NCBI GenBank assembly: GCA_039096225.1
Contig: JBBPEB010000027.1
Coordinates: 682,001-746,000 of the forward strand
DNA from: Blastocystis sp. Blastoise
Taxonomy: Eukaryota; Protista; Bigyra: Opalinata
DNA: 64,000 nt
Reading direction: 5' to 3'
Made by a program: the position numbers and the translations under genes. The notes under the pieces are model-generated. The model was not told the DNA's origin. It saw only the letters and a list, made by a program, of their open reading frames with translations, and searched no databases. Shown here piece after piece: positions 6,067-63,393 of the stretch (within the stretch, counting starts at the first letter, position 1; each line of letters opens with the position of its first letter).

Positions 6067-6703
6067 TTAAATAAGAAGCTTTTCAATTTCAATCTTAAGG
6101 TTTTGAATTTGATCCTTTAATTGAGAAGAATCGTTTTTGACTACAGAACAAGCAATAACAGGTCTAGTAACACCACAGGCACGACCAAGAGCAGTCTTGC
6201 TAGGAACAAAAACATAAGGAATGTTTTTATCTTCACAAAGAAGGGGTAAGTGAAGAAGAATCTCAAGAGGTTCAGCATCAGCAGCCATAACAATGAATTC
6301 GGAAATACCTCTATTCAGAGTTTTGGTAGCTATGTATAAATGTAAATTTATTAAATATATCATAAATAATTGATATAATACTAATAATATTGTCATAAAA
6401 AGAATTATATATTATTGTTATTATCATGATTGATAATTAATTAACATATATATATATATTATTTAATAAAACTAAAGAAAAAAAGGAAATTTCGGATAAA
6501 ATATTAAAATACTTAAGATATAGTACTAATAAAATATATAGCTTCATTGGCACCCTTCTTTAACTGTTTGTAATTAGTAGCTTGTTGAACTAAATCAAGA
6601 ATAGAAACGGTTAAATTACCATCAGCTAAAGGATAAGCTTTAGGGTTAGCAGAATCCTATATCTTATGTTATACAATATGAAACATAATGAACTTACGGT
6701 CAT
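6067..6703 (-). CDS. SNU13: SNU13/NHP2L1 (15.5K; U4/U6 and box C/D K-turn-binding protein), 3 exons
   Basis: Exons 6703-6698, 6656-6542 and 6329-6067 give [67 protein letters not shown]. Intron 2 reads CT..AG (see findings). Confidence 0.97.
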
Positions 6704-7951
6704 TTTTATGAATATATAATAAGAGCCTCGGCTAAAAAACTAAGGTTGTTTTCTAAATGAAAAAGAGAAGGCAGATTTGTGTGGTGAATTCTTTTGCTTT
6801 TCGACTTTTTTGATAATCACGATTATTAAATAAATTACTACACAAAATAAAAAATAAACAGAAATCAGACACTATAATTCAGTTTATGTAAGTAATATCT
6901 AATACTTGCTGATTCAACTACTCAACTATGGTCGTAATTCTCCATATAAGTATATAATAAGTTGTTATTATTACTTAAAAAATGATTCTTAAAGGAAGCA
7001 CTTTGTTTTAACATATGATTTAAAACATTTATTCAATGTAAACGATGATGAAAATATTTTACTAAGGTTATTTTGTTAGTTTAATAGTTTTAAGTTTATA
7101 TATAAAGAGAAAGTACTGTAAAGTTGTAAGTATTATCAGCCTTTAAATATTTTTTTAAATAATTTATTACCATTACAATGAATATTTCTTTTTAGTATAA
7201 TGTATAGAATTAATTATACTTACTTCTTTCTATGTGTTGTCAGTATAATCATTTTATTTTCAATTTATCTATAAATCTTTTTTTTTTCATTGATATTATC
7301 TTCTTTTTAATAATTTTCATCGTTAATGCTGTCTCACATGTTGAAATCAATAACCAAATTTATGAAATATTTGATTTGTAAATATGAATAAATTAATGAT
7401 TTCATACATATTATAAAAGACTTTGACATTTAAAGTAAAGTATATAAATAAAGAAAACAGTCAACACACTTTTACGCATTTCAATATATTACGATATTTA
7501 AATACGACCTAGCTAGATCAATATTCTATTAAATAACAAAATTTTTGTATATCTTTATCTAAAGATGCTCATAATTCATTTTTTACTTTGAATAGTACAT
7601 TAATGAGCAAATATATACACAGATTCAATTGTTAATTGAAACGAAATTTAATGTACATTGATGATTTTCTTCTTTATTATTATTACTATTTTGTTTTTTC
7701 AACATTATTCTTATTATACTCAGCCATTCATTATATATATTCTAAAAAAACAAATTTGAAACTTGCAAATCTTTCAATAAACCGCGAAATATCATTTTGG
7801 TAAGTATTCTCATCCTATATATTATTTTAATAATATAAAATATATTAGAATAAATAAGTATTGTGTGTAGTATTTAAAATTCAATGTATATATCTATATG
7901 ATGATTATTTATGAGTGTAATACTGTTCTGTCTAGTTAGTTTTCTATTTTT

Positions 7952-60625: not shown

Positions 60626-61252
60626 CGAAAAATACACTAATTACGTATAAATAATATAAATAATAATTGAAACTCTTTAAAAAATAATCGTAGTTTCTTT
60701 AAAAACAGAAGCTTTAAAAAAGAAATAATTTTTGGAGTGATTGTTTTTTATGTAAGAGTAGTTGATAACAATTTCATTTTTGAGGTCTCCTTGTAACGAA
60801 CACAAGTAATATGTTATAGAATAAAGAATTCTAAAAAAATATATGTTTTTCTTTTAATGGATTCTGTAAATTATAAATGAGAAATCATAGCTTCTAAAGG
60901 ATATACAACAAAAAGATTTATAGAATGAAAGGTTGTAGGACAATCAGTTTTTTAGATATTGCTCAATATACGTTATTTTTAATTATTTATTCGTGACATA
61001 TGTGGAATTGGATTATATATATGTATAATATTGTTGTTCAGAATGAATAACAATGAAATGAAAAAAAAATACTTGTTTTCAAAAGAGTATTGATTAATAA
61101 GAAATTTCGCTGCGAATAATACAAAAAACCATGATTTAAAGAAATACGAAAATACAAACAAAAGAGTAAAATTCATTTTTTAAAGGGTTTTTGTTCTAGC
61201 TTTTTGGCTTGAATATTCGAAGAAAGATATATACCATAGTTTAAAGAAAGAA

Positions 61253-63393
61253 ATGAGTTCATCAGAAAGTACGCCAGTTGGTGTGAAAGTACTTGCGGAT
61301 CATTTAGTTAAGGTTAAGCTTTCTTATGAAGGTATTTGATTGATTTTTAAAATGAAATATATATAGAGCAAATATACCAGCTATTAACAAAACTGAAAGT
61401 AGCAGATAAAGAAAACAAAGAATTGAAAAATACGTTGAATTCTATGGAAGAAGAGTTGGAAGAAAGACGAAGTGAATTATTTCAGTTGAAACGAGAATCT
61501 TCAGATCATTGGAGAATTGAGGAACGTGAGAATTGGAAAGCTGCGTTGAATCAAGTTCAAAGAGATCGTAAACGTTTGGCTGATGGTATGATTTCTCTAT
61601 TTCTTACATATCAATAATTGGATAAACAATATTTTATACTTATATATTTATTATTATAATATATAGAAAATACTCAATTAAAGAATGATGTAGAGAATTA
61701 TAAAAATAGAATTAATAATTTAGAAAAACAGGTATGTCTATAATTTTATATGTTTTAAAATAAATCCTTTATATGTATTATGTTATTATATATAGTTATT
61801 AGATCATGAATCTATTCCCGTGATAACATCTTTGAATTCCCTATCTCCTATGGTGAGTCCCGTGGTTATTGGACCTCCTCTTCTTTCTTCTAAAGATACT
61901 GATGAGAATAATGAAGAAGATATAGAGATTCCGAAACATAATATTCCTCAAGTAATAGATATTGATACAGAAAATAATAATATTAATAATAGTGAAAATA
62001 ATAATATTAATAATAATGAAGATAATAATACTAATAATGAAGATAATAAGAATAAAAATGAAATTATTAATAATAATGAAGATAATAATAATAATAATAA
62101 TGAAGATAATAAGAATAATAATGAAATTATTAATAATAATACTAATAATAATACTACTGATAATAGTGCTATTATGGATACTATATATCAAAAAGAAGAT
62201 AACTCTGAAAGTAGTGATGAAGAAGGTGTGACAACTATATATACTGCTTCTCAAGCTATAAATAATAATAATAATATCTCAGATAATAATAATAATAATA
62301 TCTCAGATAATAATAATAATAACACTAGATCTACGTTATTATTACCTCCAAATATCATTTTAAATGCTGTTTCTGAAGATATAAATGAAGATGAAGAATT
62401 AAATAATAATAATAATAATAATAATAATAAAATTACATCTACTACTACTACTACTACTACTAATAATAATAATAATAAAGACAAGAGTAATGAATTGAAA
62501 GAAAAAGATGCCAAAATACAGTTATATAAGGAACAAATTATGAATTTAACAAATACGATCAAACAATTACAATCTGATATAAAGTATATATATATATAAT
62601 AATAATACTTATAATTATAATAATAATTATTATAGATATAACGAGTATACATATAATAAAGAAAAAGATGGTCTCATGGAACTGTTTAATGTATATATAT
62701 ATTCATATGCTATAAATATATATATAATTATTTATAGGAAAAAATAACTGATTATCAAAATTCTTTAGAAGTATATATATTTATAATTAATATATATATA
62801 TATATATATATATAGGCTTTAAAATTAAAATTAGATAGTGAGTTGGAATTAAAATGGGAATTACAACAACAATTAAAACAGGAAATTGAGAAGAATAAAG
62901 ATAATGGATTATTATCTTTCCTTTGGAGATATATATATATATATATATATATATATATATATATATATATATATATATATATATATATATATATATATAT
63001 ATATATATAAATCTCTTCTTGCTTTATATTCATTCTTTCTTTGTATATATCAAAATATCTATATTATTATAATTATATAATTACTTATTTAAACAGAAAA
63101 TCTCTTTTAATTTTTGAATTTTTATTGACGACTTTTTTCCTTTTTATTCTTTATTAGTATTAAATACTATATATTTTTTTATTTTGTTCCTATTTCAAGA
63201 TTTATATTAGTTGTTTATAAACTACTGTTTTCTTATTATCTTTATGGAAATCAATTTGTTCATATTTAATCTCTTCATTTTTTTCTATATATATATAATC
63301 TAAAAACATACACTTTCTCAATTTTTCAATTTTTCTCACTTGTAGTTAATATCGTGATATATATATATATATATAGGATATTTTTATAAATAG
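61253..63393 (+). CDS. Coiled-coil protein with Asn-rich low-complexity middle; 3' end uncertain (63010 or 63393)
   Basis: Continuous frame through six GT-AG introns. Heptad-rich segments (LKNTLNSMEEELEERR..; LKLKLDSELELKWELQQQLKQE). Confidence 0.7.

Follow-up and report, generated by a model that had tools for sequence, protein, structure and literature searches.

Do introns of Blastocystis sp. Blastoise end in dinucleotides other than GT and AG, or does the published sequence misstate how they end? The question is raised by a window of 64,000 nucleotides (nt), C2:682001-746000 of the Blastoise (Rus-B) assembly (genome of 33.34 Mb, 34 contigs, ~24% GC), in which nine introns had been reported to carry other ends, the odd base always reading like the exon on the far side of the junction. 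Junctions in the window were rebuilt by hand and by a gene parser that was trained on ~300 kb of the Blastoise genome and was blind to this match rule. Between the two, all nine non-GT-AG junctions of the original prediction were found to be present in the assembly sequence. From sequence comparisons, we favor, at a probability of roughly 80%, a reading in which the introns are ordinary GT-AG ones in the genomic DNA, the assembly having been overwritten by spliced reads at seven of these junctions and having kept uncorrected GG-to-G errors at the other two. The observation therefore holds for the assembly, and a biological cause behind it is improbable.

The parser output contained 164 introns in the window, part of them false. 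Odd ends make up ~5-6% of introns, and ~94% keep both terminal Gs. Seven of the odd ends are single-end substitutions, whereas two introns are one G short, so that donor and acceptor share a G. Of the seven substitution junctions, the parser placed three exactly; the others it misplaced or bypassed. The nine introns are as follows.

6330-6541, minus strand: SNU13 intron 2, CT-AG, in which the C is the first base of the next exon; 5-nt repeat.
43859-43936, minus strand: Ubl-LRR intron, pure (TA)n, one G short, with GG read as G.
49843-49943, minus strand: V-ATPase H intron 1, GT-AA, in which the final A is the last base of the upstream exon; 10-nt repeat.
53419-53614, plus strand: SF3A3 intron, TT-AG; 6-nt repeat.
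55696-55930, plus strand: presenilin intron, GT-AT; 3-nt repeat; exon end and donor copied in tandem inside.
56165-56234, plus strand: presenilin loop intron, GT-AA; 3-nt repeat; ambiguous, with in-frame GT-AG alternatives.
58189-58321, minus strand: SEL1 intron, AT-AG; 7-nt repeat; no U12 signature.
59405-59451, minus strand: SEL1 intron, TT-AG; 17-nt junction repeat; register taken from the reading frame alone.
59634-59680, minus strand: SEL1 intron, shared G.

For three of the odd junctions (SF3A3, V-ATPase H, and the AT-AG intron of SEL1), the exact register could be set from homologues. The two SF3A3 exons join at human positions 396 and 399, and the WLxK-LxGL spacing at this junction, with two residues between, is kept in 33/33 homologues, so that use of the sole nearby GT would cost the protein some of an invariant motif. 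The V-ATPase H orthologue from another Blastocystis (L015) is interrupted at the same site, likewise in phase 2, by a 34-nt GT-AG intron. In the deposited Blastocystis sp. Blastoise model for the window gene, KAK8795665.1, a GT is reached at the expense of 10 conserved residues, which the L015 orthologue retains. At the SEL1 AT-AG join, the Sel1 profile resumes at position 9.

The remaining registers were argued in other ways. For the presenilin GT-AT intron, the downstream exon begins at position 172 of the Presenilin profile and no in-frame GT-AG pair was found within 15 nt. The upstream exon gave no Presenilin match, and the join thus rests on the reading frame and on the PSEN1 sequence. 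The exon end and donor site of this intron are tandemly repeated within it (window 55672-55852), as either a real duplication or an assembly error. In SNU13, a GT alternative at -12 would remove GANE, an important motif of this protein, on which the register was based. Exons flanking the SEL1 TT-AG intron gave no family match. For the two shared-G introns, a frame requiring one more G was favored in SEL1 by coding score (15.4 vs -6.2), and that of Ubl-LRR, which gave no Pfam match, was argued by hand from the LRR pattern. At presenilin GT-AA, the in-frame GT-AG alternatives fall in a non-conserved loop.

The odd base is identical to the exon base across the junction in 7/7 substitutions (P ~4e-4, a value that is somewhat optimistic because the seven junctions were hand-picked). 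The two shared-G cases match the mRNA by construction and so give no evidence for the rule, which had been put forward for every case and stands for the substitutions. For microhomology, an extension test was employed in which the G was restored and the run of a spliced read into the intron was scored with BWA-MEM-like values (match +1, mismatch -4, and clip 5, which are the defaults of that aligner). Net-positive extension was obtained at 4/7 odd ends and at 3/196 comparable canonical ends in the window (Fisher P 2e-5); the three canonical ends belong to two LRR genes and a peptidase gene. At the four odd ends with a net gain, essentially all spanning reads would bring the exon base past the junction. 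At SEL1 59405-59451, several bases have apparently been overwritten. The match rule and the enrichment in microhomology together argue that the odd base was templated by mRNA, either in the cell or in the computer.

Evidence bearing on the site of copying came from a duplicated SDHA gene, present as two inverted copies (C18:586441-588887 and 601633-603974) with 6 substitutions between them over 2.3 kb. The ~180- and ~240-nt introns are present in both, but from one copy the 55- and 45-nt introns are precisely absent. In the other copy, the 45-nt intron ends in TG (GT-TG), the T being the exon base, and the GenBank model of this copy reads through the intron. A distant Blastocystis has a GT-AG intron at each of the four positions. 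Set against the six point differences, three mRNA-like changes, confined to short introns that an aligner could gap, are the pattern expected from polishing with spliced reads. Missing introns were also seen in V-ATPase H (window 48414-50458, minus strand), in which three adjacent L015 introns are missing, all within the 730-nt third exon.

Of the spliceosomal components that had been named for inspection, U1, U5, U6, and Prp8 were canonical in the parts compared. Two identical U1 genes with a standard 5' end were found, with no variant; three U5 genes have a standard loop 1; and U6 has the ACAGAGA box, the AGC triad, and a normal stem-loop. Prp8, for which the comparison was limited to the PF10596 region, is nearly identical to human residues 1442-1599, with the loop region unchanged. 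As for the introns themselves, those of other Blastocystis on DNA metagenome contigs were GT-AG at 7/7 sites for V-ATPase H and 4/4 for SDHA. In Blastocystis ST1, 98.3% of introns are GT-AG, and essentially all the others fall into the GC-AG, GA-AG, and U12 classes (PMC5608401).

Rus-B is a tortoise-gut isolate in xenic culture with a reported genome of 33.3 Mb, 33 scaffolds, and 23.1% GC; it was sequenced by Nanopore R9 and MiSeq and assembled with Flye, followed by racon, three rounds of Polypolish, and one of POLCA (PMC12129017). The Methods of that paper describe the Polypolish rounds as 'Illumina DNA polishing' and the POLCA round only as 'short-read', and a sentence in the Results names DNA and RNA together for 'polishing and annotation' (PMC12129017). 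With both named and the POLCA reads unspecified, the text neither affirms nor rules out RNA-based polishing. POLCA aligns with bwa mem and replaces a base when an alternative occurs more than once, with at least double the count of the reference (PMC7347232). No read-derived contig spanning an odd junction was recovered by exact look-ups or by homology search with exon open reading frames, no close relative was found in JGI metagenomes, and no further copy of the intron-bearing genes of the window was seen in a genome search that simple repeats swamped.

We infer the presence of RNA among the polishing reads and of a G in the genomic DNA at the altered positions. Spliced RNA reads would have been aligned by BWA-MEM, a non-spliced aligner used with Polypolish and POLCA, whereby a read crossing a junction could be extended a few bases into the intron where exon and intron ends look alike. 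Where such reads outnumber intron-containing ones, the polisher would replace the terminal G with the exon base; the same process could delete short introns entirely, as may have happened in one SDHA copy. The shared-G pair would stem from GG being called as a single G next to a (TA)n tract, an error common with Nanopore R9 that polishing did not correct. A polishing artefact was what the original prediction wanted excluded first; it is now the favored reading, on the match rule, the microhomology, the canonical machinery, the canonical introns of orthologues, and the SDHA pair. A parallel exists in a Nanopore assembly polished with RNA-seq reads in Pilon, in which RNA was aligned in the same non-splice-aware manner and the authors disabled structural fixing 'in case it collapsed introns' (PMC5765664). 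What is reported there is the risk of collapse, not overwritten splice-site Gs, and for Blastoise the use of RNA in polishing is read from an ambiguous sentence.

Several observations weigh against this explanation. The odd set was chosen by hand, and seven canonical ends with net-positive extension persist in ~260 kb, a number not below the chance expectation. Neither a permutation test, which had little power, nor a test of internal positions showed canonical ends to be depleted in microhomology. SEL1 retains short introns with long flanks despite three or four altered junctions. The left/right (strand) asymmetry expected from Polypolish trimming (PMC8812927) was not clear, the cases being few and mixed. 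Introns are also lost naturally in the genus (SDHA intron 4 is missing in L078/L079), and a second pair of duplicates, encoding AP-4 sigma, has every intron present and canonical in both copies, with no differences of the SDHA kind.

The same bases could have been copied in the cell, if frequent recombination of reverse-transcribed mRNA with the gene deleted short introns and overwrote the ends of others, with a standard spliceosome still removing the ~5% of introns so altered. Base identity and its link to microhomology are predicted equally well, and the adjacent, precise losses in SDHA and in the third exon of V-ATPase H (relative to L015) would follow. Genes with stronger codon bias also have a lower density of short introns (rho -0.51, P 1e-4; for long introns, rho -0.24, P 0.08), a trend that is compatible with the artefact as well as with natural loss through cDNA and that parser errors confound. 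Against this, housekeeping genes would have to be spliced efficiently without G+1 or G-1 by canonical U1, U5, U6, and Prp8, and the tracts, which are in register and in some cases have only 1-2 matching bases past the change, would seem too short for a stable heteroduplex. Two of the four SDHA introns would moreover have been lost within 0.26% divergence, with all four positions common to a distant Blastocystis, a rate hard to reconcile with ~140-160 introns per 64 kb. Conversion templated by cDNA, one of the options originally offered, thus predicts the right bases at the cost of a spliceosome tolerant of both losses, and we regard it as unlikely.

Plain Nanopore consensus errors beside (TA)n, combined with misread gene models and with no RNA reads involved, would explain the shared-G introns and perhaps also both presenilin acceptors, which end (TA)n runs. 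Two of the calls, presenilin GT-AA and an extra SEL1 candidate (59978-60041, below), have in-frame GT-AG alternatives, and the unverified odd calls of the parser agree with the exon base in only about half of cases; because (TA)n supplies false acceptors, such de novo calls are too noisy to enlarge the set. Error of this kind leaves unexplained the C in SNU13, the 17-nt SEL1 repeat, the 7/7 match, and the precise deletion of SDHA introns, and homologues pin down the registers of SF3A3 and V-ATPase H. It accounts for a minority of cases only, and as the source of the whole set it is unlikely.

A relaxed spliceosome for which TATA-rich ends set the boundaries, the terminal Gs having decayed by ordinary mutation, would suit the highly stereotyped sequence of the intron ends past the dinucleotides, the GA-AG donors of the genus, and the tunicate and Giardia precedents, but this option of the original prediction found no support and is very improbable, since random loss of G would neither copy the exon base 7/7 times nor follow microhomology, both Gs survive in ~94% of introns of a genome with 24% GC, and the small nuclear RNAs, two identical U1 genes among them, and the Prp8 domain are canonical.

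Known intron classes were also compared. U12-type introns can have AT-AG or GT-AA-like ends; however, a RTATCCTT-like donor was found in 0/9 odd introns and a CCTTRA branch motif near the 3' end in 0/9, and a U12-type reading was rejected in the absence of both the RTATCC donor and the branch motif. Nor could a repeated intron family be detected, the nine odd introns having no similarity to one another or to ~300 kb of genome beyond (TA)n. Their terminal inverted repeats consist of self-complementary (TA)n only, and 39% of canonical introns score equally. An origin as introners was rejected given the lack of a sequence family in the ~300 kb compared and the V-ATPase H and SDHA positions common to distant Blastocystis. 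Amoebophrya introns (PMC7789003) resemble those of Blastoise in their varied terminal dinucleotides and in short direct repeats across the exon-intron boundary. There, however, >60% of introns are involved, a subset belongs to repeated families with 8-20 nt inverted repeats, and U1 was not found, whereas in Blastoise ~5% of introns are affected, their sequences are unrelated and of low complexity, their positions are ancestral in the genes compared, and U1 is canonical. Spliceosomal introns without GT or AG are likewise known from Fritillaria and other tunicates (PMC13326754) and from the Giardia CT-AG intron, but these come with altered U2AF or divergent small nuclear RNAs, unlike the standard U1, U5, U6, and Prp8 domain of Blastoise. 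Within the genus, Blastocystis ST1/ST7 have GA-AG and U12 introns, both of which probably occur in Blastoise too, and no CT-AG, TT-AG, non-U12 AT-AG, GT-AA, or GT-AT class (PMC5608401).

The main value of these results is as a warning about the public Blastoise genome and the intron findings drawn from it. If the ends are artefactual, the Blastoise/Rus-B assembly has altered splice sites in expressed genes and is probably missing short introns from them. Deposited proteins are already distorted, V-ATPase H by the 10 missing residues and one SDHA model by its translated 45-nt intron, and claims of non-canonical splicing or of intron gain or loss made from this assembly call for caution until raw DNA reads are consulted. 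Were the ends real, they would reveal a new way in which splice sites can change and would call into question whether a standard spliceosome requires the pair of terminal Gs.

Further candidates were noted in and outside the window. The SEL1 candidate, which was absent from the original prediction, has an in-frame GT alternative 9 nt upstream; in the three candidate introns outside the window, whose registers are provisional, the odd base equals the exon base.

59978-60041, minus strand: extra SEL1 candidate, possible CT-AG; kept outside the statistics.
62928-63376, plus strand: weak, unverified candidate (GA-AG), located where a coiled-coil gene ends.
L034:4516-4678: candidate GT-AA intron.
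L035:6025-6103: candidate GT-AT intron.
L029:1068-1176: candidate AT-AG intron.

A DENN-domain gene has a probable GA-AG intron (L031:539-643) in a register that agrees with Pfam; introns of this class are known from Blastocystis ST1. In 194 kb of C2, 24 matches to the U12-type donor motif were counted, one of which adjoins an intron misplaced by the parser near offset 183561-183705; minor (U12) introns are probably present in Blastoise. Among the parsed genes, the strongest codon bias was that of alpha-tubulin (L032:5810-7150), which is intronless, short introns being scarce in such genes. An HMG-CoA synthase-like gene in the window (46227-47593) has a 79% identical paralogue at C2:983666-984871. 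Finally, the intronless GatB gene (window 4167-5660) is matched by an identical 1751-nt contig in Logan run SRR35557353, which may hold reads from the Blastoise strain.

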